Counted from the first letter of the stretch, positions 464 to 33,902 are shown. The stretch: 64,000 nucleotides of DNA from Glycera tridactyla (GCA_965644265.1 OZ286465.1:72106001-72170000); one strand, 5' to 3'. Numbers and translations: made by a program. The notes: generated from the sequence alone by a model not told the origin.

Positions 464-577
464 AATACACCAGGAGATTTGTGGGGTCGTGCAAATCTCA
501 AGCCAACAGGAGCAGTCTTTACACGGAGTGGGTTGCCAGCCCGCAAAGGCCGTGGAGGACAGGGTGGTGATGACGAG
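464..577 (+). CDS. Phase-0 cassette exon of the low-complexity insert (38 aa, NTPGDLWGRANLKPTGAVFTRSGLPARKGRGGQGGDDE)
   Basis: Acceptor tcatcctatag|aat and donor gacgag|gtatga; 114 nt and stop-free; ends in GDDE like the downstream insert exons. Not in the ORF track. Confidence 0.75.
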
Positions 578-2035
578 GTATGAACTACTGTGATTTTGAT
601 GATCAAAAATGATGCAGGCTTGTTAACCTCTGGGATCCTTGTATTATGCTGTCTTATTGAAGCTAACATGAAAGTCTTCTCCACATGAAAAATATGGAAT
701 TCGCTGACGCACTACTTCAGAAAGTATTGTCATAATATCTATTTGATTCTTAACTTACTCATGATTGTGCTCTTCAGAACTGTATTTTGAGATATAGAAC
801 ATTCTAATACATTTCACTGAAGAGAACGTCGATTCTCTTCAGATTGGATTTCTGCAAATTGAAAAATTGACTTGGTGGTGAAGGATTACATTTTTATCAC
901 TGTAACTTTTATGTTTTTTTCGCAAAAGTGGGGTTAGTCAGTAGTTATGGTTTCATAGTAGCAGTTGATTTCAGGGTGTAAGGAATTTTCCATAGCAGAT
1001 TTGAGAAAATTGAAGGATTCAGTGCTGTAGCCATAATGAAATGCATGCAAGTATTTTTGCTTTTTCTCTCAATACGATCTCACTTATGAATCAATCAGCT
1101 CCATAACTTGCTCATACTTTTTAGCACTTTCTGTTGCATGCAGATATCCCATTATAGATTGCCAAAACACAGATGAATACTGTATTATTCTAACTGCCAG
1201 TGCAAATGTAATATTTAGGATCTAATGAGTATCATGAATAAGACCTGAATTAGAGTCTGCCGGTCATAACAAGATCTTGCTATTGATGGAATTTGAGACA
1301 CAAAAAGCGAAGAAGTTCGCTGGTTTTGGATTCACATTCTTATCTTTCATGCTGATGAATAATTGCTATGATTTCATTTCTCTCACTTCATCCCATACGC
1401 AGCTGTAGTTGCCTTTGAACCAATTCACTTGTCATATGATTGCTTGGATTCACTGTTGGCCGGGCCTATGACTATTTGCCTATTGTTTTTAGTGCGGGTA
1501 TTGAAAATCAGCTGGACTGTATAGAAGGTGCAATTTCCATTCTGGCTTCAGGAAACTGTGGAAAATTTCATATAAAATACCAGTATGAAATGAAATGTTT
1601 TGATGAATGTTAGCATGAGCATTAAAGAATTGTAGTCTGTGAGATAGTTGGTGCATGGTAATTGGCCTATAAATCATCATGGGACATGATTTTAATTTGG
1701 AAGGTCATCTTTCTTGGCTGGAGAATTCATTATTAATCCCTCCAAACATATTATTCTCAGTTTCCAAGGATTCGGCCTGATTTCCCTATCAGCGAATTCA
1801 GATTCAATCCTACTTTCTCCAGCTGTCGGTTCATCCAGCCCTGAAGCTAGTATGATCTGCTCATCCAAAATCTTTTGCAATGTGAAGTGATTTTGGTGGT
1901 CTGGGTGGTGGTCTGCAGAATTCTATGTTTCAATGCACTGAACCACTTTGAAAGATAGAATTAGTGTGTCTTTTCTATCACTCTTTACTCACACTGAAGC
2001 TTAAATGTAAACTAATTGCTTTTCATCACTTCTAG

Positions 2036-5000
2036 ACTTCTCCGCATGATATTGATGGTGATGGCGAGTCCACTGGGAGACCAGGGAGTGGTGATGGTGT
2101 CAATAAAGACATTGGCGGTCATCCTCATAAGCAGGGTCATCTTGATTCTTATCCAGATTTACCAGAAGTGTTAGACACATCATTTGATTCCAATGATATC
2201 CCTGAGCCTACCAGGCTCCCTAGCAGTGTTGATGACTCACATGTTTCAAAGGAAAATATCAGTGGTGATGGCGTAGATATGAAATATGAAATGAAGCATC
2301 CAAGTAATTTGACAAAGGTTCCGGGAAAGTTAGGACCATTTCAAATAAAAGATGGGAGCAAAGAAGATCAAGGCAATCAAAGTAACAAAGCATCCAAACA
2401 TCTATACACACCTGATCTGCAAAATCTAAAAAAATCAGATGATCCATGGGGTAGGAAAAAGCTTCGTGCTGCAAAACCAACACAGCCCAGTGAACCTAGT
2501 AGTTTGAAAGGTCATCTCCTCGGGAGGGAAAATTTTCCTGGTGCACTTGGTCCAGGGAGAAGAGAAGAACATAATCTTCACGATCATCCTGCCCTCAGGG
2601 CCTCAGATCCACACAAATTATTTCCAGCAGATCGTGATGCTAGGGATAGCAATCCTTTAGGCCGAAGTGACAGAGCAGATCCCTGGGGCCCATGGGAGAG
2701 AGGAGGCACAGAAGGGGCCTCTGATCCATACAAAACATTTCCATCAGATTCTGATATCAGCGATAGAAGGGGTCCTTCAGGCCCAAGAAATAGTGCAGAC
2801 CCCAGTGCTCCTTGGGAGAACGGAGGGAAAGATGGGGCCTCTGAGCCACACAAAAAATTCCCATCAGCTTCTGATACCAGGGATAGAAGGGGTCCTTCAG
2901 GCCCAAAAGATAGTGCAGACCCCAGTGCAGCTTGGGAGAGAGGGGGCACAGAAGGGGCGTATGATCCTCACAAAATATTCCCAGCAGATCCTTATGATAG
3001 CAACCCTCTTGGCCCAACCAACAGAACAGATCCCACGGCCCCCTGGGAGAGAGGAGGCACAAAAGTAACCCCCTATTCACACAAACCATTTCCATCAGAT
3101 CCCGATATCAGGGATAGAATTAGCCCTTCAGGTCCAAGAGACAGAGCCGACTCAAGGGCCTCATGGGAGAGGGGAGGCACAAAGGGAGCCTCTGATCCAC
3201 AGAGAAGAGAACCAGCTGGTAATGATCTTGGGCGTGGAATAGCTTCTATATACTCAAGAGTAGATCGGGATCCTCATGGTCATGCCAAGATGTTGCATCC
3301 AGATGATCGCTTGAATGCTGCAAAGGACCCTGGTCTTCGTAGTCCTTCCTATCCTGACCAGGCAAAAGATCTGCTTGACTCTGGTAGTAGGCCAGCGGGT
3401 ACCATTGATCACAGTAAGATGTTAGATCATTCTACTCCACATGACAAAAGTTTGAAAAGTGGTCAAAGTCATCCCCATGGACCACATGGAAAAAGAGGTG
3501 ATATCAAACCCTTCGGCAAGAATGAGTTCCATAGCCCCAGTGAGAGAGAGGGGTTGGGTGGACCTCATGGTTCCAATGACAGATGGTATCCTGACGATCC
3601 CAATGATCCTGCTAGGAAACAGGTAGGTAGCCCTTTTGTTAGTGATAGGAAAGGACAGGATGGTACCTCTGAGAAGAGATCTGATGATCCACATTCACCT
3701 AGTAATCTAGATGATCAGTATCTCAAAAAGAGAGCTGATTTTGATGACTTATCACGCAATCCATGGGAACATGATGATGACCAGGAAAGCCACCCTGAAG
3801 ATCTGGGTGATTCTGATGGTTCACACTCACTCCCTACTTTACCCATGAGGCATCCTAGCGATTTCACCAGTCCCCATGAAAACAGGCAATCACGGGGCCC
3901 CAAAAAGGAATTAGAGCCCGGCAATTCAAGTAGCCCAGTGGGTAGCAGCACAGATGATAGCTATCATCCTAGCCAGACAGGTCAACCAGGTTTTACTTGT
4001 AGTCCAGGTGGAATGCATAAGCCAGATGACATTCTCCATGCTGATGGAGAGCTAGTTGATACTGATGAAAGTGATCTAGATGAAAATCGCAATCTTGGTC
4101 AGAGAAAACACTCAACAGTTAGAGTATCAACTGACTCTCATTCCAGTACAGTTACTAGTAGTGTACATGAACAAAGGACAACCAAACATCGACATGAGAG
4201 GCATGATGACCCTGATCTTTCAAATGAAGATGATCTTAATTTAGGTGATCCTTCGGGTCGAAAAAGACTTCATTTAACTGATGTACTAGGCCAAAGGAGT
4301 AAGAGACATTCTGATGATTTGTTCCCAGCTTGTGACAATGAAGAGTCAGATAGCATCAGCTCTGATCAAGAACTTATGGCACCTCATAGGAATTCGGAAG
4401 TAGCTCACCAAAGACCGAAGAGGATGAAGGGAAATGGTGATCCACACTCTCCCTATAAAGAAAAACGGCTGGATGATCCCAGCGGAAAAGTACATCAAGA
4501 CCACTCTGAAGAATATAGTGGGGAGGATGATACCCCAAATAGGTTTGGTCAAAATCAGATTTCTCAACCTTCTAGCAATCCTATGTCCATCGATGGCGAT
4601 GATGAGCAATGTCAAGGACATGATTTTCCAACAGGTATGATTGAATCTCGAAGAAATAATGATGAAGATCATTCTAAAATTGTGATCACCACTGAACATC
4701 ATTCTAGTTCAGTGTCTAAGAGTATCTTCGAACGAAGGACAAGCAGGCAAACAAATGAAAGATGGGATGATGATTTCATATCAGAGGAAGATAATTCATT
4801 GTCAGATGATCCTTCAGGTGGGAAGAGGCCTCACCCAACTGGCAAGCTAGTCCCTAGGAATAAAAGACCTCTTCATGGTCGCCAGGTTCCTGATGAATCT
4901 GGGGACTCTGATGGCCTCAACTCAGATGAATATAGATACACAACAGATTCACCAGCCACTAGAGATATACGACTGGGTCAGCCCAAACCCAAGAGGGCAA

Positions 5001-8000
5001 AGGGATCCGTTAATAAACACCAATCAGATGCTGAAGAAGAGGTGGGTTCCTTTGATGAAGAATATCCTGACCGACCAACCAAATCTGACCAAACAGCTAG
5101 ACCTCATAAGGGAAACGGTAGAAAAATTGGTATTAGGGATAATTTGGAAGATTGTGATGATTTGGAGGAAGCAGAATTCAGTGATGAATCTGATAGAATG
5201 CTTCCTGATGATGCTGCTACACGGATATCGCGTGTGACCACCGAGCATCATTCATATGAGAGCAAGAGCACAACTGAGCACAGAATAGGGGAACACTCTC
5301 ATCAAGCTAGAAGTAAGAGAAGAGGTTTGCATCCGTATAATTACTCAGATGTCCCCAGTGATACAGATTATACTGATGATCCTGAATGGGGAGGTAGTAC
5401 AGATACTCATCCACAAAGAAGAGCTATTTCAGGTGATCCTGATGACCAATATGGTACATATCCAGACTATTTAAATGGCTCAGGTTATAAGAGGAGACCA
5501 GGTATCACTGATGATCCTTCCATCAGTGATTATTCTGATGGAGGATATGGCCCTGGCTATAACCCTGCTCTGCATCAGTCAAGTGGCAAGGGTAAGAGGG
5601 CAGTCCCTGAGGGCCAAGGCCATGCTAGCCACCAAGATGAGGGAGCAGATATTCTGATGGATCAAGAATCTGATACTCATGGATTAGTCAGCAAGAGGGA
5701 TCTTCAAGATCATCATGCTGATTCTCAAGGTCGTGGAAGGCAAGATAAGCCCATTGACCCAGCTATGGCAGGTACACATGACTTGCCAGATGATCAACAT
5801 CATCCAGGAAGAAGACCTAATTCTGATGATGCAGATGACATGGCTTCACCATTTCATTATGCTCCTGCTGGGAAAAGACATACCATCGACCCTGAAGGGT
5901 CTGATTCTCATGGGTGGCCTGATGATCCAGAGTTAGGTCAAATGAGGGATCCAGGTGACACACACGATGATCCCCGTGATCCTGGTAAAGGACACAAGCC
6001 AAGCAGTCCCAATAGGAGAGGAGTTGATCCAATTGCTCATAAAAGAGGCACACAAGACTATCCTACTGACCCACATGAGGATTTGGAGGAAGCAGAATTC
6101 AGTGATGAATCTGATAGAATGCTTCCTGAAGATGCTGCCACACGGATATCGCGTGTGACCACCGAGCATCATTCATATGAGAGCAAGAGCACAACTGAGC
6201 ACAGAATAGAGAAACACTCTCATCAAGCTAGAGGTAAGAGAAGAGGTTTGCATCCGTATGATTACTCAGATGACCCCAGTGATACAGATTATACTGATGA
6301 TCCTGAATGGGGAGGTAGTACAGATACTCATCCACAAAGAAGAGCTATTTCAGGTGATCCTGATGACCAATATGGTACATATCCAGACTATTTAAATGGC
6401 TCAGATGATAAGAGGAGACCAGGTATCACTGATGATCCTTCCATCAGTGATTACTCTGATGGAGGATATGGCCCTGGCTATAACCCTGCTCTGCATCAGT
6501 CAAGTGGCAAGGGTAAGAGGGCAGTCCCTAAGGGCCAAGGCCATGCTAGCCACCAAGATGAGGGAGCAGATATTCTGATGGATCAAGAATCTGATACTCA
6601 TGGATTAGTCAGCAAGAGGGATCTTCAAGATCATCATGCTGATTCTCAAGGTCGTGGAAGGCAAGATAAGCCCATTGACCCAGCTATGGCAGGTACACAT
6701 GACTTGCCAGATGATCAACATCATCCAGGAAGAAGACCTAATTCTGATGATGCAGATGACATGGCTTCACCATTTCATTATGCTCCTGCTGGGAAAAGAC
6801 ATACCATCGACCCTGAAGGGTCTGATTCTCATGGGTGGCCTGATGATCCAGAGTTAGGTCAAATGAGGGATCCAGGTGACACACAAGATGATTCCCATGA
6901 TCCTGATAAAGGACACAAGCCAAGCAGTCCCCATGGGAGAGGAGTTTATCCACTTGCTCATAAAAGAGGCACACAAGACTATCCTACTGACCCACATGAG
7001 GATAGGAGTCATGGCTGGCCTGATGATCAGCATGATCCAGGGAGAAGGGACATTTCAGATGGAGATGGCGACCCAGGCAGTCCTTATAGGAAAAAAGGTG
7101 ACTCACAAGCTGTTGATCCTGATGCAGATGACAGCCATGGGTGGCCTGGTGATCAGCATCATCCAGGGAGAAGGGACTTTCCAGGTAGAGGAGGTGACCC
7201 AGGTAGCCGGCATAGTAGAAATAAGGATCCATATGCCATTGACCCTGAAGCGGATTATTCTGTTGACCCTGATGAGGATGAAACTGATCCTCATGCTACT
7301 GGTAAAGGAGGTAACCCCACAGATGGCCAAGACTATGCATTTGACCCTCATAATGATGATATTCATGGGTGGCCTGATGATTCAGTGTCAGGTAGAATGA
7401 GTGATCCAAGTGACACAAACGGAGGGTATCCACATGCTCGTGAAACAGATGGGCAAGACTATCCAATTGATACTGATGAGGATGATACCCTTGGTTGGCC
7501 CGATGATCGGCATCATCCAGGAAGAAGGGCCATTCCAGATAGAGGAGACCAGGGTAGTCCCCATATGAGGAAAAGGGGCCCTCGTGCTCATGGAACAGGT
7601 GGAAAAGGTGATCCAATCGACTCTCATGATGATGATATCGATGGGTGGCCTGATGATTCAGTGTCTGGTAGAGACCCAGATGACACACATGCCGATCCTC
7701 ATAGTCCTGTTAGAGAAGGTTACCCCACCAGACCCCATAAGAGAGGAGGGCACCCACATGCTCTCGGAACAGATAGGCATGATGATCCTATCGACCCTGA
7801 TGAGGATGATACTCATGGGTGGCCTGATGATCAGCATCATCCAGGGAGGAGGGGCGTTCCTGGTAGAGAAGGCAGTCCAGGCAGTCCTCATAGAAGAAAA
7901 AGAGATCCACATGCCATTGCTCTTGATCAGGATGATTCTCAAGGGTGGCCTGATGATCTAGTGTGGGGTCAAATGAGGGACCCAGGGGACACAAGCGCCA

Positions 8001-11000
8001 ATCCTAGTGGTTCTGGTAGGGGAGGTGACCCTGCCAGTCCTCAGAAGAAAGGAGGGTACCCACGTAGTCGAGAAACAGATGGGGAAGACTATCCTATAGA
8101 CCCTGATGAGAATGATATTCATGGGTGGCCTGATCGACATCATCCAGGAATTTCCGATAGGCGAGGTGACCCAGGTGGTCCTCATGGAAGAAAAGGGGAC
8201 CCACATGCTATTGATCCTGATGAAGGTGAAGCCGATCCTCATGCTCCTGGTAGAGGAGGTGACCCCACCAGTCCCCATAAGAGAGGTAGGTTCCCAGATG
8301 CTAATGAAATAGATTGTCAAGATGATCCTGATGAGGATGATTCTCAGGGGTGGCCTGACGATCCAGTGTTAGAAAGAATGAGGGACCCAGGTGACGCACA
8401 CGCTGATCCTTGTGGTCCTGGTAAAAGAGGTGACCCTACAAGCCCCCATATGAATGGAGGGTACCAACATAGTCCAGGAACAGATGGGGAGGACTATCCT
8501 ACAGACCCTGATGAGAATGATATTCATGGGAGGCCTAATGATCAGCATCATCCAGGAAGAAGGACCATTCCGGATAGGCAAGGTGACCCAGGTGGTCCTC
8601 ATGGAAGAAAATGGGACCCACATGATATTGACCCTGATGAGGATGAAACTGATCATTGTCCTGGTAGAGAAGGTGACCCCACCCGTCCCCATAAGAGAGG
8701 AGGGTTCCCTCATGCTCGTGAATTAGATGGTCAAGATGATACTGATGAGGATGATTCTCAGGGGTGGCCTGATGATCCAGTGTTAGGTAGAATGAGGGAT
8801 CCAGGTGACACACACTCAGATCCTCGTGGTCCTGGTAAAAGAGGTGACCCCACCAGTCATCGTAAAAAAGAAGGGCACCCACATAGTCGAGAAACAGTTG
8901 GGGAGGATGATCCTACAGACCCTGAAGAAAATGATATTCATGGGAGGCCTGATCAGCATCATCCAGGAAGAAGGACCAATCTGGATAGGCCAGGCGACCC
9001 AGATGGTCCTCATGGAAGAAAATGGGACCAACATGCTATTGACTTTGATGAGGATGAAGCTGATCATGGTCCTGGTGGAGGAGGTGACCCCAACAGTCCC
9101 CATAAGAGAGGAGGGTTCCCTCATGCTCGTGAAATAGATGGTCAGGATGATCCTATCGACCCTGATGAGGATGATACTCATGGGTGGCCTGATGATCAGC
9201 AGCATCCAGGGAGGAGGGGCATTCCTGGTAGAGAAGGTTACCCAGGCAGTCCTCATAGAAGAAAGGGGGATCCACATGCCATTGATCCTGATCAGGATGA
9301 TTCTCAAGGGTGGCCTGATGATCCAGTGTTGGGTAAAATGAGGGACCCAGGTGACACACACGCCGATCCTAGTGGTTCTGGTAGGGGAGGTGACCCTGCT
9401 AGTCCCCATAAGAACGGAGAGTACCCACGTAGTCGAGAAACGGATGGGGACGACTATCCTATAGACCCTGATGAGAATGATATTCATGGGTGGCCTGATC
9501 GACATCATCCAGGAAGATGGGCTATTCCAGATAGGCAAGGTGACCCAGGTGGTCCTCGTAGAAAGCAAGGGGACCCACATGCTATTGACCCTGATGAGGA
9601 TGAAGCTGATTGTCATAGTCCTGGTAGAGGAGGTGACCCCACCCATCCCAATAAGAGAGGAGGGTTCCCTCATGCTCGTGAATTAGATGGTCAAGATGAT
9701 ACTGATGAGGATGATTCTCAGGGGTGGCCTGATGATCCAGTGTTAGGTAGAATGAGGGACCCAGGTGACACACACACAGATTCTCGTGGTCCTGGTAAAA
9801 GAGGTGACCCCACCAATCCCCATAAAAAAGGAGGGTACCCACATAGTCGGGAAACAATTGGGGAGGATGATCCTACAGACCCTGATGAAAATGGTATTCA
9901 TGGGAGGCCTGATCAGCATCATCCAGGAAGAAGGACCATTCTGGATAGGCCAGGCGACCCAGATGGTCCTCATGGAAGAAGATGGGACCCTCATGCTATT
10001 GACCCTGATGAGGATGAAGCTGATCCTCATGGTCCTGGTAAAAGAGGTGACCCCACCAATCCCCTTAAAAAAGGTGGGTACCCACATAGTCGAGATACAG
10101 TTGGGGAGGACAATCCTACAGACCCCGATGAAAATGATATTCATGGAAGGCCTGATGATCAGCATCATCCAGGAAGAAGGACCATTCTGGATAGGCGAGG
10201 TGACCCAGATGGTCCTCATGGAAGAAAAGGGGACCCACATGCTATTGACCCTGATGGGGATGAAGCTGATCGTCATAGTCCTGGTGGAGGAGGTGACCCC
10301 ACCAGTCCCCATAAGAGAGGAGGGTTCCCTTATGCTCGTGAAAAAGATGGTCAAGATGATCCTATCGACCCTGATAAGGATGATACTCATGTGTGGCCTG
10401 ATGATATGCATCATCCAGGGAGGAGGGGCATTCCTGGTAAAGAAGGTTACCCAGGCAGTCCTCATAGAAGAAAAGGGGATCCACATGCCATTGATCCTGA
10501 TCAGGATGATTCTCAAGGGTGGCCTGATGATCCAGTGTTGGGTAAAATAAGGGACCCAGGTGACACACACGCCGATCCTTGTGGTTCTGGTAAAAGAGGT
10601 GACCCCAACAGTCCCCATAAGAAAGGAGGGTACCCAAATAGTCAAGATACAATTGGGGAGGATGATCCTACAGACCCTGATGAAAATGATATTAATGGGA
10701 GGCCTTCTGATCAGAATCATCCGGGAAGAAGGACCATTCCGGATAGGCGAGGTGACCCAGATGGTCCTCATGGAAGAAAATGGGACCCACGTGCTACTGA
10801 CCCTGATGGGGATGAAGTTGATCGTCATAGTCCTGGTGGAGGAGGTGACCCCAACAGTCCCCATAAGAGAGGAGGGTTCCCTCATGCTCCTGAAATAGAT
10901 GGTCAAGATGATACTGATGAGGATGATTCTCAGGGGTGGCCTGATGATCCAGTGTTAGGTAGAATGAGGGACACAGGTGACACACACTCAGATCCTCGTG

Positions 11001-14000
11001 GTCCTGGTAAAAGAGGTGACCCCACCAGTCCCCATAAAAAAGGAGGGTACCCACATAGTCGAGAAACAGTTGGGGAGGAAGATCCTACAGACCCCGATGA
11101 AAATGATATTCATGGGAGGCCTGATCAGCATCATCCAGGAAGAAGGACCATTCTGGATAGGCCAGGCGACCCAGATGGTCCTCATGGAAGAAGATGGGAC
11201 CCTCATGCTATTGACCCTGATGAGGATGAAGCTGATCCTCTTGGTTCTGGTAAAAGAGGGGACCCCACCAGTCCCCTTAAAAAAAGAGGATACCCACATA
11301 GTCGAGATACAGTTGGGGAGGATGATCCTACAGACCCTGATGAAAATGATCTTCATGGGAGGCCTTCTGATCAGCATCATCCAGGAAGAAGGACCATTCC
11401 AGATAGGCGAGGTGACCCAGATGGTCCTCATGGAAGAGAAGGGGACCCACATGCTATTGACCATGATGGGGATGAAGCTGATCATCATAGTCCTGGTAGA
11501 GAAGGTGACCCCACCAGTCCCCATAAGAGAGGGTTCCCTCATGCGCGTGAAATTGATGGTCAAGATGATCCTATCGACCCTGATGAGGATGATACTCATG
11601 GGTGGCCTGATGATCTGCATCATCCAGGTAGGAGGGGCATTCCTGGTAGAGAACGTTACCCAGGTAGTCCTCATAGAAGAAAAGGGGATCGACATGCCAT
11701 TGATCCTGATCAGGATGATTCTCAAGGGTGGCCTGATGATCCAGTGTCAGGTCAAATGAGGGATCCAGGTGACACACACGCCGATCCTAGTGGTTCTGGT
11801 AAAAGAGGTGACCCCACCAGTCCCCATAAAAAAGGAGGGTACCCACATGGTCTAGAAACAGATGGGGAAGACTATCCTACTGACCCTGATGAAGATGGTA
11901 TTCATGGGAGGCCTGATCAGCATCATCCAGAAAAGGGGGTTATTGCAGATCGGCGAGGGGACCCAGGTGGTCCTCATAGAAGAAAAGGGGACCCACATGC
12001 TATTGACCCCAATGAAGGTGAAGCTTATCCTCGTGATCCTAGTAGAGGAGATGACCCTAACAGTCCCAATAAGAGAGGAGGGTATCCACATGCTCATGAA
12101 ACAGATGGGCAAGACTATCCAACTGATCTTGATGGGGATGATAACTATGGTTGGCCTGATCATCAGCATCATCCAGGGAGGAGGGGCATTCCTGGTAGAG
12201 AAGGTTACCAAGGCAGTCCTCATAGAAGGAAAGGGGATCGACATGCTATCGATCCTGATCAGGATGATTCTCAAGGGTTGCCTGATGATCCAGTGTTGGG
12301 TCAAATGAGGGACCCAGGTGACTCACGCACCCATCCTTGTGGTTCTGGTGAAGGAGGTGACTCTACCAGTCCTCATATGAAAGGAGGGTACCCAGATAGT
12401 CAAGAAACAGATGCGGAAGCCTATCCTATAGACCCTGATGAGGATGATACTCATGGGTGGCCTGAAGATCAGCATCATCCGGGAAGAAGAAGCAATCCAG
12501 ATGGACGAGGTGACCCAGGTGGTCCTCATGGAAGAAAATGGGATCCACATGCTATTGACCCTGATGCCCGTGAAAAGGATGGGCAAGACTATCCTACAGA
12601 CCCTGATGAGGATAATATTCATGGGTATCCAGACCAAGGTTACCCAGATGGTCCTCATGGAAAAGGGGATCTACATGCCATTGACCCTGATGAGTATAGT
12701 ACTCATGGGTGGCCTGGTGATCAGCATCACCTAGGAAGAAGGACCATTCCAGATAGACGGGGTGACCCAAACGGTCCTCATAGAAGAAATGGGGATCCCC
12801 ATGCCATTGACCCTGATGAGGATGATACTCATGGGTGGCACGATGATCACTATCATCCCGAGAGAAGAGCATTAGGTAGAGAGAGGGACTCACAAGCTGA
12901 TCCCCATGGTCCTGGCTGGGGACATAACTCAGGCAGTCCCCATAGGAAAGGAACGGACCCACATGATCGTGAATCCTTCGGAACAGACCAACCTATTGAC
13001 CCTTATGTGGACGACAATCATGATTGGCCTAATGATCAGCATCATCCAGGGAGAAGAGCCATTCCAGATAGAGGAGGTGACCCAGGCATTCACTATAAGA
13101 GAAAAGGGGACCCACATGCAAGCCCTCGTGGAAGAAGAGCTGACCAAGGTACCTCTGATTCAGATGAGGGGAATCATCCATTTCATTCTTCCAAGCCTGA
13201 TACCATTGGTAGGCCACGTGGCCTGGGCACAGTTGGACCATATGGTGCTGACAGCCATGGTCCTTATGGCAGGGACTCTGATAGCACTCATACATCAAAT
13301 GCCAGTGATTATGCTGATGACAATTATGGCCCTGATGACATAGGGAGTCGAAGCTATCAAAATGATTGTCCTGGCCAGAGAGGTTCTATTGGTCCAGAAT
13401 ACCATTCAGGAAGTCCTGACGGCTATCTCAATCATGGGGATAGAAGGCCTTCAAAAAGTCAACCCTATTCTGAAGACATTTCTGGAGATTCAGACAATCC
13501 TGGGTTTGGACACTATGGCAACTCCAGGCCTAGCAAAAGAAAAACATACCATCCAAGTCAAAAAAGACACCAATCTGATCCACATAGACCTCGTGAAACA
13601 GAGAGCTCTGTTGATCCCTATGACTCCAGCAGTAGTGGAGGGCCAGGAAGTTGGACTGATCATGGTGGGAGACACCATCCGAGTAAGCACGGTGGCTCAG
13701 GTCATCAAGGTGGAGGGCCTGACAGGCCTAGTGGTAGGCAAGGTAGAGCACGTCCTAGTTTTGATTCTATCCCAGATAGTCCGTTTTTCCCATTTGGCTC
13801 AATGTTCTCAAATTGGCCACATGATCCTAGACCACTTGGTAATTCTGAACGAACTTACAGTCCAGGGAATCTTCCATGCATCCTCTGTGGTCGTGGGGGT
13901 CCAATTACACCATGCAGAATTTGTGGTGTAGGTGGACACAGTGAGCAGTTCTGCCCCCAAAGTCTCGATGGAAATGACACATCTTATGGACCTAGCCTCA

Positions 14001-17269: not shown

Positions 17270-17702
17270 GTATGACAACAATTTATTATTGCATATCCAT
17301 ATACTTCACAAAAGATATGATATGAGGATAGGGGTCATGGATATGTATTGGTTAACTAGATATTCATGAAGTCACACATCATTTGTGCCTCATTAGTCAG
17401 ACTTATTTCAACTGACACCAAAACAAGGAGTCAATTCATCAGCACAACCAAGAGTGCTGGGAATCTAATATAATATAGGATGTCTTACTGCTCAAGGCTC
17501 AATATTCATTTATGTTGGTGTTTTTTGACCGATTTTAGTGAAGGCTAAATTTCATGTAAATGTTTTTGGCAGTCGATTGAAATTTGTCTTGCATTTATGG
17601 CATGCAGTAACTTTTCTTCACTAGTTTGAGAATATCATGTTTATTCTTGAGCCCGCCTCAACAAATCATTCTGTTATAGTGCATGATTTAACTTATTTAT
17701 AG

Positions 17703-18428
17703 TATGGTCCTGATGGCAAACCGATTCATGGAGTTGGATATGGACCAGATGGTTCTCCACAGGGAAAGCAGGAGAGTAGTGGCTTGCTTGGATCTAATGG
17801 ACAGAGAGTCAATAGAAGGAGAAAAGATGGGCATGGCAATCATTGTGAGGAGGAGGATGTGAAGGGCATAGATGTGGATGATGATGGAATACCTACACCA
17901 GATGTTCAGAGATATGACTTCAGGTCACCTGGCAATGATGGTGTACAAGGACAAGATCGAGTTGGAGGTCGTAAAGTACTCGGCCATGGTGAAGATGGTA
18001 ACATTGAATCAGATTATAGGAGAGGCAACCAAATGGGGAAAGATGGTGAATTTGGAGTAGATGGCAGTAAGCATGGCCAAGGAAGGAATGAGATGTATGA
18101 TGAGGATGCAGACTCAGGACCAGATGAACAGGCAGGCCATGGCAAGGACGGGCCTAGATCCAAGAGATATGGACTAGATCATCTGAAGCCTGGTCAAGCT
18201 GGAGATGATGAAGGATATGAGCCAGATGGGCTAAGATCTAAACCCAGAAGCCCCAGAAATGACAACTATGGAGCTAACGGCGAGAGATCCCGACATGATC
18301 ATGATGATGATGAGGTAATTTCGTCAAATGAAGAAAAGTACCTTGGGCAGCAACCGGATATTAGTGGTGATCGAGATACAAAGCAACAAGATGGTACAGG
18401 AGGAGGGCATCATCAAAAAAATGATAAG
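17703..18428 (+). CDS. Phase-0 insert exon (242 aa, YGPDGKPIHGVGYGPDG...HHQKNDK); alternative in-frame donor at 18314
   Basis: Acceptor ttatttatag|tat, in frame with ORF 17784..18521. Donors gag|gtaatt (18314) and aag|gtacat (18428). Same G/D/R-rich composition as neighbouring exons. Confidence 0.75.
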
Positions 18429-18605: not shown

Positions 18606-18731
18606 TTTGATCTACATGGACGTCACAGGAAGGACAAACATACTTCTGAAGAGGGTGAAGAGGATGACTATTCTGGTGATAATGTGGCTGGAGCAGAGAG
18701 CCCAAGTCATCATGGTGGTGATGATGCCGAG
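18606..18731 (+). CDS. Phase-0 insert exon (42 aa, FDLHGRHRKDKH...HHGGDDAE)
   Basis: Acceptor ttatttctgcag|ttt and donor gccgag|gtactt; 126 nt within ORF 18525..18791. Confidence 0.75.
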
Positions 18732-20534: not shown

Positions 20535-20606
20535 ATTGGACCAGATGGACGCCATCGACATGGACGTGGAGGAAGATTAGGGGATGGTGATCATGATGGC
20601 GATGAG
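20535..20606 (+). CDS. Phase-0 insert mini-exon (24 aa, IGPDGRHRHGRGGRLGDGDHDGDE)
   Basis: Acceptor tgtctag|att and donor gatgag|gtataa; 72 nt; resembles one unit of the 24.8-27.5 kb repeat. Confidence 0.75.
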
Positions 20607-21200: not shown

Positions 21201-21290
21201 TATGACTCGGAAGGCCAGCCAAGATATGGTGATGGAGATGGTGATAGGCGTAGGGGTCGGCGGAGGCCACAAGATGACTTGGGTGATGAG
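21201..21290 (+). CDS. Phase-0 insert mini-exon (30 aa, YDSEGQPRYGDGDGDRRRGRRRPQDDLGDE)
   Basis: Acceptor ctctcttccatttag|tat and donor gatgag|gtacca; 90 nt, stop-free. Confidence 0.75.
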
Positions 21291-21482
21291 GTACCAATGA
21301 TGTAACATTTTTGACAATATAGCTTTCATTTGCACATCTCATATGTCATGTGATCGGACTCTTCTATAACATTTTATGTCATTGTAAGCAGTGAAGTCAT
21401 TGAGCAATTTGAAATGTTCAGCTATTGTGAACCTACCATTCTTACAGCAGCGGTCGTTTGATTTTGATACTATATATCTATA

Positions 21483-21695
21483 GGCCTATTCAACTGGTCG
21501 TTTTTGTTGAGTATGGCCGGTCCGTTGACTATGTTTTGCATTTGGGTGGATGCCTAATGCTTTTTCGTTGCACATGATCTAAACGGTCATTTGACTATGT
21601 TGAACACGTTAAACAAAACCTATTTGGTTGGGCTATGACCATTGAGTACATTTCTGCAACAAACACTCAACAGAAACCGGCCGGTCGAATAGGCC
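21483..21695. mobile_element. MITE-like element with imperfect ~29-bp terminal inverted repeats
   Basis: ggcctattcaactggtcgtttttgttgag ... ctcaacagaaaccggccggtcgaataggcc; no clear target-site duplication (TSD). Confidence 0.55.
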
Positions 21696-23053: not shown

Positions 23054-23827
23054 AAAGTGGGGAAAGATCTTGTAGATGATGCTGAAATGAATGATGAAAC
23101 TGCTGGTTCTCCAGTACATGGACTAAAAAGACCAAACCATGATGATGCCAATGTTGATGAACCAGGAGTAAGAAGTCAATATGATAATGACCGATCTGGG
23201 AGAGGACTTGTTGGTAGGAGAGATGGGAGTAATGGGAATTCAGATCCAAGTAGAAGCAAGTACTCCAGTGGGGAAGATAATGTCGATGAAGGTACTAAAG
23301 ATGCCAGGAAGGAATATGGTGATAGTGATCCAAGCATGTCTATAGGACATATTGGAGAGGGAGCGTTATCTGAACATGGAAAACCAGATGATCACAAAAA
23401 CAAATATGACACAGAGGGTAGTAGTGATGGAGAGGGAAATGCTGACAGAGATGGAAAGAAACACAATTATGGACACAGGGGTACATTAAGTGATGATAAG
23501 GAAAATCGACATCATGGAGATATAGACATTGGTGATGAAGATTATGAATATGGCTCTGGTGGGAGAAGGGCTAAACTTCGTCACAGTCACCCAGATTCAT
23601 CAGATGATCAAATTGCATCTGATCCGACCTTGCATGGTAACAATAACGGAAGTGATCCAAGAGGTGGAAGGAGCCATCCACCATATGGCCCCAAAGACCA
23701 GAAATTCGGTTCCAATGGCCAGCAGCCTCCTGGTAGACTTGGACGTGATGACGATGACTTAGATCCAAATGGTGGAGGGTTGTTTGGAAAGGACAGGCAG
23801 CTTAACAGTCCAGATGAGCATCTGGAG
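23054..23827 (+). CDS. Phase-0 insert exon (258 aa, D/G/H/S-rich)
   Basis: Acceptor catcaaatcag|aaa, in frame with ORF 23057..23866; donor ctggag|gtaatt; 774 nt. Confidence 0.75.
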
Positions 23828-24776: not shown

Positions 24777-27467
24777 TATGGACGGGATGACGATCCTGGC
24801 AGAGGAAGTGGAAGCGATGATGAATTTGGACAGCACAGAGGAAAAGGAGATAATGATCTGGATAAATACGGACCAGACGGACAAAGAATGGGAAGAGGGA
24901 AAGGTGGAAGGGGTGGAAGTGGACATGGGGGAGATGGAGATGATGATGAATATGGACCAGATGGTAAAAAGAGGGGTAGAGGAGGGCCAGGAGGAGATGG
25001 CGATGATGGATATGGACCAGATGGCAGACTTAGGGGTAGAGGAGGGCCTGGGGGAGATGGAGATGATGATGAATATGGACCGGATGGAAAGAGAAGGGGT
25101 AGAGGAGGGCCTGGAGGAGATGATGACGAATATGGACCGGATGGAAGGAGAAGGGGTAGAGGAGGGCCCGGGGGAGATGGGGATGATGATGAATATGGAC
25201 CGGATGGAAGACGAAGAGGTAGAGGAGGACCTGGGGGAGATGGAGATGATGATGAATATGAATATGGACCAGATGGAAGACAAAGAGGTAGAGGAGGACC
25301 TGGGGGAGATGAAGATGATGACGAATATGGACCAGATGGTAAAAGGAGGGGTAGAGGAGGGCCCAGAGAAGATGGGGATGATGATGAATATGGCCCAGAT
25401 GGTAGACAAAGAGGTAGAGGAGGACCTGGGGGAGACGGAGATGATGACTATGGACCAGATGGGAGACGGAGAGGTAGAGGAGGACGTGGGGGAGATGGAG
25501 ATGATGAGTATGGACCAGGTGGAAGAAGGAGGGGTAGAGGAGGGCCTGGGGGAGATGAAGATGATGATGATGAGTATGGACCAGATGGAAGAAGGAGGGG
25601 TAGAGGAGGGCCCGGGGGAGATGGAGATGATGATGACTATGGACCAGATGGGAGGCGAAGGGGTAGAGGAGGGCCTGGGAGAGATGGAGATGATGATGAA
25701 TATGGACCAGATGGAAAGAGGAGGGGTAGAGGAGGGCCTGGGGGAGATGGAGATAATGATGAGTATGGACCAGGTGGAAGAAGGAGGGGTAGAGGAGGAC
25801 CTGGGGGAGATGGAGATGATGATGAATATGGACCGGATGGAAAGAGGAGGGGTAGAGGAGGGCCTGGGGGAGATGGAGATAATGATGAGTATGGACCAGG
25901 TGGAAGAAGGAGGGGTAGAGGAGGACCTGGGGGAGATGGAGATGATGATGATGTGTATGGACGGGATGGGAGACAAAAGGGTAGAGGAGGACCCGGGGGA
26001 GATGGCGATGATGATGAATATGGACCAGATGGGAGACGAAGAGGTAGAGGAGGGCCTGGAGGAGATGGAGATGATGATGAATATGGACCAGGTGGAAGAC
26101 AAAGAGGTAGAGGAGGACCTGGGGGAGATGAAGATGATGATGAATATGGACCAGATGGGAGACGAAAAGGTAGAGGAGGACCTGAGGGAGATGGAGATGA
26201 TGAATATGGACCAGATGGGAAGAGGAGGGGTAGAGGAGGGCCTGGAGGAGATGGAGATGATGATGGATATGGACCAGATGGAAGAAGGAAGGGTAGAGGA
26301 GGGCTTGGGGGAGATGGAGATGATGATGAATATGGACCGGATGGAAAGAGGAGGGGTAGAGGAGGGCCTGGGGGAGATGGAGATAATGATGAGTATGGAC
26401 CAGGTGGAAAAAGGAGGGGTAGAGGAGGACCTGGGGGAGATGGAGATGATGATGATGATGTGTATGGACGGGATGGGAGACAAAAGGGTAGAGGAGGACC
26501 CGGGGAAGATGGAGATGATGATGAATATGGACCAGATGGGAGACGAAGAGGTAGAGGAGGGCCTAGAGGAGATGAAGATGATGATGAATATGGACCAGGT
26601 GGAAGACAAAGAGGTAGAGGAGGACCCGGGGGAGATGAAGATGATGATGAATATGGACCAGATGGGAGACGAAGAGGTAGAGGAGGACCCGGGGGAGATG
26701 AAGATGATGATGAATATGGACCAGATGGGAGACGAAGGGGTAGAGGAGGGCCTGGAGGAGATGGGGATGATGATGAATATGGACCAGATGGTAGACGGAG
26801 GGGTAGAGGAGGACGTGGGGTAGATGGAGAGGATGATGAATATGGACCGGATGGAAGACGAAGAGGTAGAAGAGGGCCCGGGGGAGATGGAGAGAATGAT
26901 GAATATGGACCAGATGGGAGACGAAGAGGTAGAGGAGGGCCTGGGGGAGATGGTGATGACGAGTATGGACCGGATGGGAGGCGAAGGGGTAGAGGAGGGC
27001 CTGGAGGAGATGATGATGATGATGATGAATATGGACCAGATGGGAGACGAAGGGGTAGAGGAGGACCTGGGGGAGATGGAGATGATGATGAATATGGACG
27101 AGATGGAAGAAGGAAAGGTAGAGGAGGGCACGCGGGAGATGGCGATGGTGATGAATATGGACCGGATGGAAGACGAAGAGGTAGAAGAGGGCCTGGGGGC
27201 GATGGAGATGATGACGAATATGGACCAGATGGGAGTCGAAGGGGTAGAAGAGGACCTGAGGGAGATGGTGATAATGATAAATATGGACCAGATGGCAAGA
27301 GGAGGGGCAGACATGGCAAAGATAAATTTGGACCTGATGGACGCCGGATTGGTGGACATGATGGATCAGAGGACAGTGATGGAGACTATGATCCAGATGG
27401 TGAACTCGGTCCAGATGGCCAGCCTCTAAAAGGCAGAGGGGGAAGGAGAGGTGACAGGGATTTAGAG
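24777..27467 (+). CDS. Phase-0 insert exon (897 aa) built from ~37 tandem copies of YGPDGRRRGRGGPGGDGDDDE
   Basis: Acceptor catttctatcag|tat and donor ttagag|gtacaa; 2,691 nt within ORF 24669..27512; all length variants between repeat units are multiples of 3. Confidence 0.85.
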
Positions 27468-27928
27468 GTACAAATTACCATTATTTCTTGCATCACCATC
27501 TCAAAATTATGATCCGATGAAATCTTTCATATCTTATATATATATTTTTCATGTCATCGGGAAATCAATGATAACTTGGTGGACTTTATTGTCCTATCTT
27601 TGCACCTAATTTGATTATTCATTTCTCCCTTTGGTCGTTCTCTTAGATTTGCATGTGACTTCCTCCTGTTTCCTTGATGTGTATTACGTGCAGGCAGTCC
27701 AGTTCGGCCAACAGAGAAAACATTAGCCAGATCCCCTACCAAGACTTCTTTGTCTTGAGTGCAACAAAAGAGAATGGGGACTCGACTTCTGTATTAAAAT
27801 ATCACAAAACATTAGGGACCATTAGCTGCAACTGGACAGCCTGCGGGACACTAAACAATCAATAATATTTTGAAAGTTAGGAAGTAGAGTTATCTTTTAC
27901 AAACTAAACTCATTATGTGAATTTCTTT

Positions 27929-28079
27929 NNNNNNNNNNNNNNNNNNNNNNNNNNNNNNNNNNNNNNNNNNNNNNNNNNNNNNNNNNNNNNNNNNNNNNNN
28001 NNNNNNNNNNNNNNNNNNNNNNNNNNNNNNNNNNNNNNNNNNNNNNNNNNNNNNNNNNNNNNNNNNNNNNNNNNNNNNN
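27929..28079. other. Assembly gap (N run)
   Basis: 151 consecutive N. Confidence 0.98.
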
Positions 28080-28892
28080 TGTCATTCATCTGTTCTGTAC
28101 TCTTCCTTTAACCCAGCCGGTACTGAATGGCGGTCTGGGCTCGGCACCTTCTCATAGACACAAGGTATAAACAGTGTTCCTTCCATTTTTTTTCACAATG
28201 AAAGCAAATCAATATAAATGCTTCTTATAAGGGTGCAGAATGATATAACTGTTTCACATAGGCATATATTTCACTCATAATATAGGCTTTCTAATTCACA
28301 AATAATGGATATACCTATTCATAACAGGCTGTGATTGAGATACTCTAGCACATATGTTGGGTGTTCAGGCACTTCCTTACCTGATGTAGCTTACCTGCAT
28401 CCCGTGACAGAGGATATATAAAATATAATGAAAAAAACTATTATGATTGTAAAATGCTGGTTTCAGAAGTTAGTATAGTATGGTGATGTAGAAGTCGGCA
28501 AAGTTGTTAATCCCATAAGCATATATATGTTCCAAATACCCATCTGAGAAAGGTCTTGCTTCCATGTCTAATTCAAGCACCTTAGCCCGCAATTTCATGA
28601 AAAGTATGACATATTTCTCCTATTATGAACTTAAATTCAGGTCAAGATGCCAAGTAGCTTTCCCAGAAAAATTTGTCTGATATCGTAAATTATGATTTTG
28701 GGAAAGGTTTTCATTTAGAACTCATATCTCACTTGACAAGGTTATATATATTCACTGTTCAAACTCCCATCAAGTGCAAACCGACCATTAACTTTTGCTT
28801 GGTAGAACATTCGCATTTTCTAACACATATCCACCTATAGATATCAGCTTTTTTCTACTTGACAACCTGTCCCCATCATTTTGTGTTGAATA

Positions 28893-29074
28893 TACAGTCG
28901 AACCTCCCTATAAAGACCGCCTTCGGTTGCATCAAAACATGGCCTTTATAGGGAGGTGGTCTTTATAGAGAGGTCATTTACTGTTGAAAATACTACTATG
29001 GTCACACTTCAGGGCGGTCTTTATAGGGAGGTGGTCTTTATAGAAAGGTGGTCTTTAGAGGAGGTTAGACTGTA
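28893..29074. mobile_element. TA-flanked MITE (Tc1/mariner/pogo-like ends TACAGTCGAACC...GGTTAGACTGTA)
   Basis: Terminal inverted repeats (TIRs) plus internal direct and inverted ctataaagacc motifs; related copies occur elsewhere in the window. Confidence 0.75.
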
Positions 29075-29569
29075 TGTGAGAATGATGCTTGTAGGGGACA
29101 CAGCATTCAGCTTCAATGATCTGGGAGACACACTACACTTATAATCACACATACACACACACACACACTCACACACACACACATGCGCGCGCGCGTGCAC
29201 ACATGCACAGAATACATGGATAGACTATTCCTCATCACCTTGACCAACATATATTTGCATGAATGCACACAACATGCACACACTGTGATGCATTGAACCA
29301 GCCACCCAGCCATGGAGAAGGGGGGTGGGGGTATTAAAAGGTGGGTCCGGGTCATAATACCATCAAGCGGGCAGGCTGATCCAAGGCAACATATGGTATC
29401 TAGGTGGAACACATGTGATGCATTATGGTCACTAGTAGTTTGTTGATACACTACTAAGGATACCTTTATAACCAGGTATAGCTGGACTGATCCCAATCTA
29501 CCCATGCAAGTTAACCAGTATCAATGGATCAGGGTAAGTGTCTGCTATACCTTACATGATAACCCCCCT

Positions 29570-29591
29570 GTGTGTGTGGCTGGGTGTGTGT

Positions 29592-29650
<59 letters not shown>
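29570..29650. repeat. (GT)n microsatellite
   Basis: Long tgtgtg run. Confidence 0.95.
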
Positions 29651-29654
<4 letters not shown>

Positions 29655-31559: not shown

Positions 31560-31613
31560 AATGGTGTGAATGGTGATGCCAGTACTGATGAGGAGAATCC
31601 AAATGCTGAGGAG
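31560..31613 (+). CDS. Phase-0 mini-exon (18 aa, NGVNGDASTDEENPNAEE); last insert exon seen before Ig5
   Basis: Long polypyrimidine tract tttttccttacttcaatttag|aat and donor gaggag|gtataa; 54 nt, stop-free. Confidence 0.65.
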
Positions 31614-33644
31614 GTATAACCTAGTTACCCACTTCTATATCTGGCCAATCACAAGTGCCTTTTCTAGGTCAAATGCCAGCCAACTAGGGCATTGCTAACT
31701 GGGTCACTTTGGCATTGTAGAATCATCTCCATCTACTGTAGCTGCTGTTTAAATTTCTCAGGCATTATTCTTCTTTCATCAGATATTCTTTGTCTTAACT
31801 TCAAGGGTACTAGTCTTCTGTGTAGATGCTTTTCTATATCTCAGGTGTATGAATGAGATTGCTTGATTGCAAACAGTTTTGAGCCTCATACCAAGTAGTC
31901 ACAGTGACTGAGCACCCTAACGTTCATTCAGGGTTTTGAGTTATCAACTCTTCCAAAATTCTGAATAAGCGGATGCAGGGAAGACCAACATCTGGGACCA
32001 GTCACTTGAAATGTCTGAACAGATGCAGACATAGTCATCACTTATTCACTGCTCCAGTTTGATTCACTCTCATTGAATTTGGAAACTGTTCCCTGTCTCC
32101 AAATAAGGGTTCACACTCTCCAACATTTCCTAGGCAGTGTTAATAGAGAAAAACAAGTTTTTGCCTTGAATATTTGGAGATAATTTATCTCTTGGAAATT
32201 TATGTATGATTGATGCTACTAAAATCAACTGGGCAGAGGGAGTTCTGCTTATTAGATGAAATTTGCTCAGACATTGGTTTGGGAGGCAAAAAATATTCTT
32301 ACCATGCATTGTGTGTGTGGTTGTGTGTGTGCGTGCGTGCACCCCAGCGTACATGTACCTGGGACTGTGTGTACGATGCTGCTAGTCAGGTGTTGGGATG
32401 AAGCATTTCCTCTGAATACATATGTCTATCAATTCTGGTGGGGTTGCTGTCATATTATTCCATTTCTGACATTCTTGGGTGAGATCTGGTTCAATCTGCT
32501 TGTAGAATTATTAACCTACTCATGATCATTTCTACATTGCAGGTGCTCAGAGTGAGGTGGCCAGTCCTTGGGCTATACTAACATGGTTGTGGAAGGGGCT
32601 CCCATCAGTCTATATTATCCCCCCCCCCCCCCCCCCCCCCCATCATCACTGCTGCTCGCTTCTATATTGGACAAAACCATCCATGAGCTAGCCTTAATTG
32701 ATAGCAGAGATATGCCAAATGAGTGATTCATTATGCACCCCTATCAGCACACCCATGATGTATTGTATCTTATCGGCCATGTAGTCTTGCTATATAAGAG
32801 TATAAGTAAAGCAAAAACTGTTATTTGCGCACAAAAAAGAGATCATAGAGGACTGTAGACCATATTACATACTCATACAATGAGTTTTCAAAGCAGCATA
32901 AATACACCATAAATGGAAAGTAATGGAAAGATTATTAATATAAGGAGAAAATGCTATGCGATCTGCATGTACTCATTTCAGTGAACTTGAAAGTGAATGT
33001 TGTAAACTGTACATGTGTATTACGTCCTTTATGGGCATGCTGCTTGGCATCGCATAAGGGCGCATACCTGGACTATCTCTTGTGTTGTTGAAAAAAAGAC
33101 CAGCCAACATCACCAGCAAGCTCACTCCTACCATTCTATTTTTGGTCACTAATGGGGAAATCCAGTAGCACTGGGATACCCGAGTAATCATATATATATA
33201 TTTTGCTGTCATATTGCTTAGCTGATTCGAATGACCTTGGTTTCATCAGATCATGATGTGATTTTCTTTTCATCAGGATGATTGTTTTCATTGTTTATTA
33301 CTGTAAGAATCTGATATGAAAGTGTTTTTCACAATGTTATTTGAATATGATGTGGATTTGTTTTGATATTTGTAATGATTTGAAATAATATTTATGTCAT
33401 ATCTTTACTGCTTAATATTGATGCCTTATACATAATGTACATGAAGCAATGTCTCTGAATTCCCTTGATTTTACGATCACATGTGTTATTCGAATAAGAA
33501 TGAATTAATGTATCATTTGATACTTGCCGTACATGTACTGGTTGCTGGTTTATTGCATTCCACCTATATCTTGTTTGTATAATTTTGTATAGATTACTGT
33601 GTTGACTGCAGAATTATGACACTTTTTTCTTCTTTTCTGTGCAG

Positions 33645-33902
33645 GTGATTGCCACTGGACCTGGTTTGGAGAAGCAGGGTGTCACCGTCAACAAATGGGC
33701 CGAGTTCTCGATCGATGCACGCCGTGCCGGAAAGGCGCCACTCTCGGTGAAGTGCATGGATGCTGAATACAATCCTGTGGATGTGATTGTCAAGGACAAC
33801 CATGATGGGACCTACTGGTGCCAGTACATGCCCACCAAGAACATCAAGCACACCATCACCATCACATGGGGCAACGTCTCCATCCCCAACAGCCCCTTCA
33901 GG
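33645..33902 (+). CDS. FLNA: Filamin exon: Ig-like repeat equivalent to FLNA Ig5 (VIATGPGLEKQGVTVNKWAEF...SIPNSPFR)
   Basis: Acceptor ttcttttctgtgcag|gtg (phase 0) and donor agg|gtcagt. Close match to recalled FLNA VKARGPGLEKTGVAVNKPAEF...KHTAMVSWGGVSIPNSPFR. Confidence 0.95.

Follow-up and report, generated by a model that had tools for sequence, protein, structure and literature searches.

Background

Few mechanosensitive actin cross-linkers have been studied as thoroughly as the filamins, in which an actin-binding domain (ABD) is followed by about 24 immunoglobulin-like (Ig) repeats and hinges, and this length is strongly conserved. Known filamins carry short unstructured hinges or inserts that are alternatively spliced; FLNC, for example, has an 82-amino-acid insertion in Ig20. 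Here, we have analyzed a 64,000-nucleotide stretch of the Glycera tridactyla genome (GCA_965644265.1, OZ286465.1:72106001-72170000), henceforth called the window, in which filamin exons from Ig5 onward are preceded on the same strand by nine stop-free exons (E1 to E9; 464-31613, + strand) that total 6,627 codons and are collectively called the insert. The leading hypothesis, favored tentatively and as the most likely single reading, is that the insert exons are alternative cassette exons of the filamin gene. As in the canonical filamins (vertebrate FLNA, FLNB and FLNC, and Drosophila Cheerio), to which the window exons from Ig5 on are orthologous, intron position and phase are conserved. In contrast, the inserts and hinges of the canonical proteins comprise tens of residues and are located at Ig15/16, at Ig23/24 or within Ig20, whereas the window insert, of some 6,600 residues, would interrupt the compact Ig3-5 module at the Ig4-Ig5 boundary.

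Giant, in-frame, lineage-specific exons with an unstructured product are also found in another cytoskeletal linker, namely the giant ankyrins (480-kDa ankyrin-G and 440-kDa ankyrin-B), to which the window is similar in these respects, the upstream flank here being a presumed Ig4. The two share no sequence kinship, however, and unlike the ankyrins the window has eight further in-phase exons and a strongly acidic, His-rich product, the inclusion of which is predicted. A second likeness, and together with the ankyrins the closest in functional terms, is to the PEVK and N2B regions of titin (and Sallimus), where short, phase-compatible exons each encode about one low-complexity charged unit, as do E1 and E4 to E6 in the window, and as seen in the 21-amino-acid units of E8; the window insert is likewise predicted to be disordered, and the number of exons could tune its length. 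With nine exons of phase 0-0, among which E1 and E4 to E6 are only 24-42 codons long, the insert does form a short-exon array of the PEVK type. It differs from PEVK in that D, G, P, R and H, and not P, E, V and K, dominate (V 1.9%, K 4.2%), in that the host is an actin cross-linker and not a sarcomeric ruler, and in that the splicing variation is a prediction. The giant single-exon proteins AHNAK and periaxin resemble the window in having an exon of ~15-17 kb made mostly of tandem units of ~130 amino acids (138 in the window), but there is no detectable homology, and the window sequence is poor in V and K and rich in D, H and R. The giant exon of AHNAK is followed by a short C-terminal region only, not by a folded repeat rod. 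Kinship of the insert with AHNAK or HRC was considered and rejected, there being no homology and a different composition.

The insert exons and their splice sites

The largest exon of the insert lies in a stop-free + strand span of 5,079 codons at 2036-17272. All nine exons begin and end in phase 0 (phase 0-0), with an AG and a pyrimidine tract before each and GTA after each, and in six of them the open frame is exactly bounded by the in-frame acceptor TAG and by a stop in, or just past, the donor (GTA TGA or GTA TAA). E1 (464-577, +; 38 codons, ending ...RKGRGGQGGDDE) has the sites tag/AAT and GAG/gtatga; since it begins at an acceptor, the transcription unit must reach upstream of the window. 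E2 (2036-17269, +) contains 5,078 codons (15.2 kb) between the acceptor ctag/ACT and the donor AAG/gtatga, and is followed by E3 (17703-18428, +; 242 codons), which starts with YGPDG and is flanked by tag/TATGGT and AAG/gtacat. Next in order are three mini-exons, namely E4 (18606-18731, +; 42 codons), E5 (20535-20606, +; 24 codons, IGPDGRHRHGRGGRLGDGDHDGDE, a single repeat unit) and E6 (21201-21290, +; 30 codons). E7 (23054-23827, +) has 258 codons, and a better acceptor 72 nucleotides upstream, at 22982 (tag; pyrimidine tract 0.67 versus 0.50), would extend it to 282 codons. E8 (24777-27467, +; 897 codons) is bounded by cag/TATGGA and GAG/gtacaa. Finally, E9 (31560-31613, +; NGVNGDASTDEENPNAEE) is a weak candidate exon of 18 codons, with a good pyrimidine tract (0.83) and a donor, GAG/gtataa, that is identical to that of E5; an assembly gap described below separates it from all other claimed insert exons and leaves it with the filamin exons.

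The mini-exons were compared with a chance set, consisting of 80 stop-free AG..GTA segments of 15-60 codons from the non-coding parts of the first 33.6 kb (1-33.6 kb), ranked by their charged and Gly composition. E5 ranked 1st, E6 3rd and E4 4th of the 80, and E1 ranked 10th, the nine places above it being taken by the other claimed mini-exons or sub-versions (place 8 by a shorter E1); thus, the top 10 were E1, E4, E5, E6 or their sub-versions only. A preliminary description of this locus had claimed nine phase-0 exons with AG/GT borders and a total of 6,627 codons, and the sizes, frames and sites were indeed confirmed, with the exception that E9, at rank 14 of 80, is indistinguishable from chance.

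Coding status of the insert

The large insert exons are clearly coding. E2 contains no stop codon in frame, as opposed to 103-869 in the other five frames, and this holds for its non-repetitive parts as well (amino acids 1-1040 and 3700-5078; ~2,400 codons), which are open in frame, as opposed to 30-221 stops for the same parts in the other + frames. The tandem periods of the insert are all multiples of three, being 120, 126, 414, 246 and 243 nucleotides in E2 and 63 nucleotides in E8, and the same is true of every offset among the ungapped self-matches (620/620). In E8, differences between the repeat copies at codon positions 1, 2 and 3 numbered 581, 1216 and 2394, respectively, and the ratio of non-synonymous to synonymous substitution rates (dN/dS) of its repeats reaches its minimum over the six frames, 0.18, in the claimed one, compared with 0.33 in the best antisense frame. 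From these substitution patterns, it is clear that at least a part of the insert has evolved as expected under purifying selection. The E2 repeats, with a dN/dS of 0.58, appear weakly constrained, which fits a fast-evolving disordered protein. Open reading frames (ORFs) antisense to E2 and E8 were considered as real genes and rejected, since their dN/dS is higher and splice signals are absent. A recent internal duplication of ~290 amino acids was seen in E2 (5159-6028 and 6080-6949, +), the copies differing at 18 of 870 nucleotides, with 16 non-synonymous and 2 synonymous changes; judging by such copies, E2 is still growing through in-frame segmental duplication under little constraint.

The encoded polypeptide

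The whole insert would encode ~720 kDa of polypeptide with a net charge of -518 and an isoelectric point of ~5.0. E2 is made of D (15.5%), G (12.1%), P (11.8%), S (8.6%), R (8.3%), H (6.5%), K (4.2%) and V (1.9%), among others, with only ~14% hydrophobic residues, and contains repeat families of 40, 42, 82 and 138 amino acids that have the conserved core P.DP.E.D.HG.P.DQHHPGRR. E8 consists of ~38 tandem 21-amino-acid units of the form YGPDG(R/K)RRGRGGPGGDGDDDE (63 nucleotides x 37.9 copies by TRF, Tandem Repeats Finder), in which basic and acidic blocks alternate. The exons resemble one another in several ways: the YGPDG start is common to E3 and E8, with the close variants IGPDG in E5 and YDSEG in E6; the ends of E1, E5 and E6 are similar to the 21-amino-acid units of E8, i.e., a basic RGRGG block and then an acidic ...GD(D/E)E block; and E4 ends in ...GGDDAE.

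On a charge-hydropathy plot, every insert exon fell far on the disordered side of the boundary, and the Ig exons fell on the folded side. AlphaFold2 modeling of the 138-amino-acid unit, with 12 paralogous copies as the alignment, returned a predicted template modeling score (pTM) of 0.10 and no secondary structure, and the last 300 amino acids of E2, modeled as a single sequence, gave a pTM of 0.19 and three isolated helices. The insert thus looks disordered, and composition, charge-hydropathy and AlphaFold2 all support what the preliminary description had proposed in this regard. A Pfam search of all insert exons found nothing above threshold, the filamin Ig fold included; a HMMER search with the last 1,199 amino acids of E2 against 1.84 billion representative proteins produced 0 matches, self-hit included; and a word-indexed search with E8 retrieved no homologue among proteins of 493-1,570 amino acids. 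The insert polypeptide would therefore be an orphan, because no match was obtained in Pfam or in the protein collections searched.

The translation of E2 also contains a CX2CX4HX4C motif of the zinc-knuckle pattern, CRICGVGGHSEQFC (13913-13954, +), which scored 15 bits against Pfam zf-CCHC_4, for which the cut-off is 27. The motif is preceded by CILCG....PC, such that five Cys are clustered in ~26 residues, while the rest of the protein has 0.6% Cys.

Filamin exons downstream of the insert

The first filamin exon of the window (33645-33902, +) matched the filamin repeat family PF00630 with an E value of 1e-22 and starts at a phase-0 acceptor. Compared with the human FLNA Ig3-5 structure (4M9P), it scored 107 bits on the third domain, Ig5, as opposed to 35 bits or fewer for the other repeats, and it is 65-72% identical to Ig5 in three related loci (L002 to L004). 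Its acceptor has a pyrimidine tract of 0.89, and the cag/GTN border is shared with the relatives. Filamin repeat exons from Ig6 onward occupy 36431-45805 (+), as seen by Pfam and by collinear tblastn matches, and a further one is located at 58349-58600 (+; PF00630, E = 6.6e-11), following an exon-poor stretch of ~12 kb; the filamin gene extends past the end of the window. Altogether, ten exon translations in 33645-45817, and in addition that of 58349-58600, matched PF00630, with E values from 1e-5 to 4e-45, and the exons at 33645-45805 are perfectly collinear with those of L003 and L004, at 52-87% identity in tblastn. Judged by these alignments, the exon at 33645 is the orthologue of filamin Ig5. 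The best matches of the Ig5 exon (77% identity) and of the Ig7-8 exon (234 amino acids; ~72-75%) were all from other species, and filamin identity was 62% to the annelid Owenia and ~45-50% to vertebrates.

The Ig4-Ig5 junction could be examined at the DNA level in four relatives. In all four, the Ig4 exon ends in ...[F/Y][D/N]P[S/T]K followed by gta, in phase 0, and the Ig5 exon starts with ag/GTN..., also in phase 0 and at a position identical to that in the window. The intron in between is short, measuring 317 nucleotides in L003, 569 in L001, 966 in L002 and 1,694 in L004, and in two more relatives, for which ORF positions only were available, filamin ORFs lie directly upstream of Ig5 in a compact arrangement. 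On this comparison, the insert-bearing interval of at least 33.6 kb is a derived, lineage-specific gain, because the Ig4-Ig5 interval is short in 6/6 relatives. A tblastn search with the Ig3 and Ig4 exons of the relatives found nothing filamin-like in 1-33,600 of the window on either strand.

Since the host intron is in phase 0 and the insert exons are of phase 0-0, the latter would fit in frame and any subset of them could be skipped. The preliminary description, the reading of which was supported in part, had identified the 33645 exon as Ig5, had placed the insert in phase at the Ig4/Ig5 boundary, and had suggested that any subset is skippable in frame; the first of these claims was borne out by the 107-bit score on 4M9P and by the collinear orthologues from Ig5 on, the second, as far as phase compatibility is concerned, by the phase and position of the orthologous intron in 4/4 relatives, and the third would follow from the common phase 0-0 of all nine exons and their host intron.

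The interval between E8 and Ig5

An assembly gap of 151 N (27929-28079) interrupts the non-coding sequence between E8 and E9, at a distance of 461 nucleotides from the donor of E8 and of 3.5 kb from E9. No claimed exon is broken by it, and no insert-like open frame was found to enter or leave it; the reading frame across it is therefore not an issue for the model. The flanks of the gap are unique, with no repeat copy across, so that continuity is neither supported nor refuted, and the attempt to use a shared interspersed repeat as proof of continuity failed for this reason. Three observations nevertheless favor continuity indirectly. GC content and the T>A strand skew are equal on both sides of the gap and match those of bona fide introns. 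A second gap, of 155 N (36851-37005), is located between correctly ordered, collinear filamin exons, and therefore such gaps in this assembly need not be misjoins. In the E8-to-Ig5 interval, AATAAA occurs 0 times on the + strand versus 10 times on the - strand (p ~0.08 against dinucleotide shuffles); with this p value, depletion of poly(A) signals was dropped from a proof of intronic status to a suggestive observation.

A possible giant filamin

The Ig5 exon is internal and has a strong, conserved acceptor, and therefore needs some upstream donor. In the 33.6 kb upstream of it, the only donors that belong to demonstrably coding + strand exons are those of the insert, all in phase 0. If the assembly is right, a filamin pre-mRNA reaching Ig5 must cross E1-E8, the splice sites of which are usable and the phase of which fits. 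These considerations, together with the orthologous intron position and phase, are among the grounds on which the insert exons are tentatively assigned to filamin. Also counted in favor of this assignment were the coding status and canonical phase-0 sites of the insert, the mini-exons that stand out from chance, the absence of Ig1-4 sequence in the window, the skew and (as suggestive only) the AATAAA counts of the E8-to-Ig5 interval, the second gap between ordered filamin exons, and a candidate disordered cassette in L003 (see below).

The course of events under this assignment may be pictured as follows. The insert would have grown as repeats, and also entire mini-exons, were duplicated in frame, and would occupy what in the relatives is the short phase-0 Ig4-Ig5 intron. 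The exons for the ABD through Ig4 would lie upstream of the window; the filamin pre-mRNA would be transcribed through E1-E9, and some or all of these would be spliced between Ig4 and Ig5, with an isoform of ~9,000 amino acids as the outcome, beside the ordinary filamin. In such an isoform, the insert may serve as a long, flexible, charged tether or entropic spring, parting the actin-binding head and Ig1-4 from the Ig5-24 rod and the dimerization end. Spliced in completely, it would add a calculated contour length of ~2.4 um per subunit (6,627 residues x ~0.36 nm), and this length would be tunable by the choice of exons, as all are of phase 0-0. The blocky polyampholyte of E8 and the His/Asp-rich repeats of E2 could additionally confer ion- or pH-sensitive extension, compaction or self-association. 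What is envisaged, as a possibility to which we would attach no great confidence, is thus a filamin of ~1 MDa, in which an acidic polyampholyte of ~6,600 residues between Ig4 and Ig5 would make of a 160-nm cross-linker an elastic tether on the micron scale, tunable in length and possibly sensitive to ions.

If true, the presence of a 720-kDa unstructured spacer within rod 1 would give filamin a new architecture, and this isoform would be the first giant filamin. It would also offer a natural experiment on the reach and compliance of a cross-linker in cytoskeletal or muscle mechanics, and would mean that the giant-exon route into a conserved cytoskeletal adaptor, known from the ankyrins and titin, was taken independently. 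The literature searches found no precedent for it, in agreement with the preliminary description, which had known of none; a proteomic study of scallop muscle, for example, mentions filamin and no giant form (PMC5963113).

Several observations weigh against this assignment. The window covers neither the ABD nor Ig1-4, such that insertion at the Ig4/Ig5 boundary is a statement about sequence beyond it, and neither protein nor transcript fragments, in collections that do not include this species, contained a junction between insert and filamin. The same literature searches that gave no giant or insert-bearing filamin also failed to find these repeat motifs. The insert is absent in 6/6 relatives, i.e., its linkage to filamin is not conserved, and its RGG-like blocks and the CCHC-pattern motif would equally suit an unrelated nucleic-acid-binding protein. 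Between the filamin exons and every insert exon with good support lies the gap at 27929-28079, while E9, located beyond it, ranked no better than chance and had no significant similarity to any other insert exon. Moreover, read-through of the E8 donor adds 14 codons up to a stop (27510-27512), and an ATTAAA is found at 27793-27798; hence 27468-27798 (+) may constitute an alternative 3' end if the E8 donor is unused, and an independent 3' end just before the gap is plausible.

Alternative explanations

Such a 3' end would be expected if E1-E8 belong to an orphan gene nested on the same strand in an enlarged Ig4-Ig5 intron, with its own promoter upstream, while filamin splices Ig4 directly to 33645. 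This alternative is less likely though substantial: the ATTAAA lies 283 nucleotides downstream of the stop that is reached 14 codons past E8, E9 is weak, the insert has no homology to filamin or anything else, and its RGG/acidic blocks and CCHC-pattern motif suggest an unrelated function, and its phase-0 symmetry would be expected anyway in a gene built by exon duplication. However, no + strand AATAAA is present in the 6 kb past E8, the donor of E8 does not differ in type from the remaining eight, all nine exons are free of internal stops, and a match in phase to the host intron would have to arise by coincidence, with odds of roughly 1 in 2-3. Same-strand nested genes are also uncommon, and their poly(A) site must be ignored by the host transcript. 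Were the nested gene the correct explanation, or indeed any of the others that accept the insert as coding, there would still be a coding exon of more than 5,000 codons and an orphan disordered protein with no relative among 1.8 billion representatives.

A different possibility is that a rearrangement has put the part of filamin from Ig5 to the C-terminus behind an unrelated gene for a giant disordered protein, the exons of which are spliced to Ig5, so that the product has neither ABD nor Ig1-4. Such a chimera, which we consider improbable, would agree with the 33.6 kb upstream being free of ABD and Ig1-4 sequence, with E1, which carries on the repeat theme upstream and not filamin sequence, and with a breakpoint at an exon boundary, as intron-mediated fusion predicts; and ABD-less filamin isoforms do occur in Drosophila cheerio. 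The window alone cannot separate it from a giant filamin. Nonetheless, the exons from Ig5 onward, being collinear with and 52-87% identical to their orthologues, look like those of the main filamin gene, which without an ABD would be deprived of its core function unless there is a second copy. The chance that the gap at 27929-28079 has joined unlinked contigs, and that E1-E8 come from another locus, was judged to be similarly small. All well-supported insert exons are indeed to its left and all filamin exons to its right, as are all copies of a SINE-like repeat (see below); its unique flanks give no sign of continuity, and the possible 3' end of E8 is only ~110 nucleotides before it. On the other hand, its size is an estimated, non-round number (151 N), like that of the 155-N gap between ordered, collinear filamin exons, neither GC content nor T>A skew changes from one side to the other, and the exons to its left and right have compatible orientation and phase. 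Essentially excluded is the last alternative, that the insert is no gene but an expanded satellite or minisatellite, or a dead pseudogene that is open by chance. Much of E2 and all of E8 are tandemly repetitive, several other frames of E8 are also open, and the dN/dS of 0.58 of the E2 repeats and the 16 non-synonymous versus 2 synonymous changes in the ~290-amino-acid duplicate are in its favor; but it leaves unexplained the ~2,400 non-repetitive codons of E2 that are open where the other frames have 30-221 stops, the repeat periods and offsets, every one a multiple of 3, the dN/dS of 0.18 in E8, seen only in the claimed frame, and the canonical splice sites that flank every open frame.

Other features of the window and of related loci

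An interspersed element of ~150-200 bp, the copies of which are 76-88% identical, is located at 28890-29085 (+), 33966-34101 (+), 45866-46055 (-) and 62083-62235 (-), all four copies being to the right of the gap; the element is probably a repeat resembling a short interspersed nuclear element (SINE). Scans of the window against Rfam and for tRNA found nothing, and a scan for bacterial-type promoters and terminators, a model that is inapplicable to a eukaryotic locus, showed no enrichment. In the ~12-kb exon-poor stretch that follows the Ig exon at 45.5-45.8 kb, an acidic open frame of 103 codons (VEYLDTDLLDQV...) was noted at 47322-47630 (+), for which neither a Pfam match, nor a counterpart in L002-L004, nor convincing splice sites were found. 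Three tandem units of ~170 nucleotides (frames ...CRCALACLFWNWACDCLP...) occupy 48183-48914 (+), and a related copy occupies 60269-60613 (+); all of these are in filamin introns and are probably another repeat family.

A few features of the related loci are also to be noted. In L003, which is ~72% identical, an open frame rich in P, K, E and A (EAIKPEAAKPAAAGPPKKPDGPKK...) was observed between the Ig2 and Ig3 exons (4884-5023, +); read with phase 1 at both ends and a perfect GTAAGT donor, it would make a cassette exon that matches the phase-1 Ig2-Ig3 intron, and P/K-rich frames similar to it were seen in L004 (1590-2170). The L003 candidate cassette is a possible small-scale precedent for disordered rod 1 cassettes in the clade. 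Directly after Ig5 of L004, there are ~20 tandem copies of a unit that combines the final codons of this exon with the beginning of the following intron (..KSPYRVSPCY..; 7500-8115, +), and a separate minisatellite (GGAVYCKQYS frame) lies within the Ig4-Ig5 intron of the same locus (5940-7160); both look non-coding. In L001 (GCA_013332715.1), an uninterrupted open frame of at least 1,124 codons of filamin repeats (1-3377, +) was found upstream of the intron-containing Ig3-Ig5 exons, and may represent a retrocopy or a filamin-repeat gene that lacks introns. By identity, the P0035 locus (ENA ERZ26052378) is the closest of the relatives, with 75% identity over 71% of the Ig7-8 exon. In this locus, a same-strand ORF of 446 amino acids without a Pfam match is situated between ORFs of filamin repeats (13693-15033, +); this may be a transposon or a further case of non-Ig coding sequence inserted in a filamin gene.

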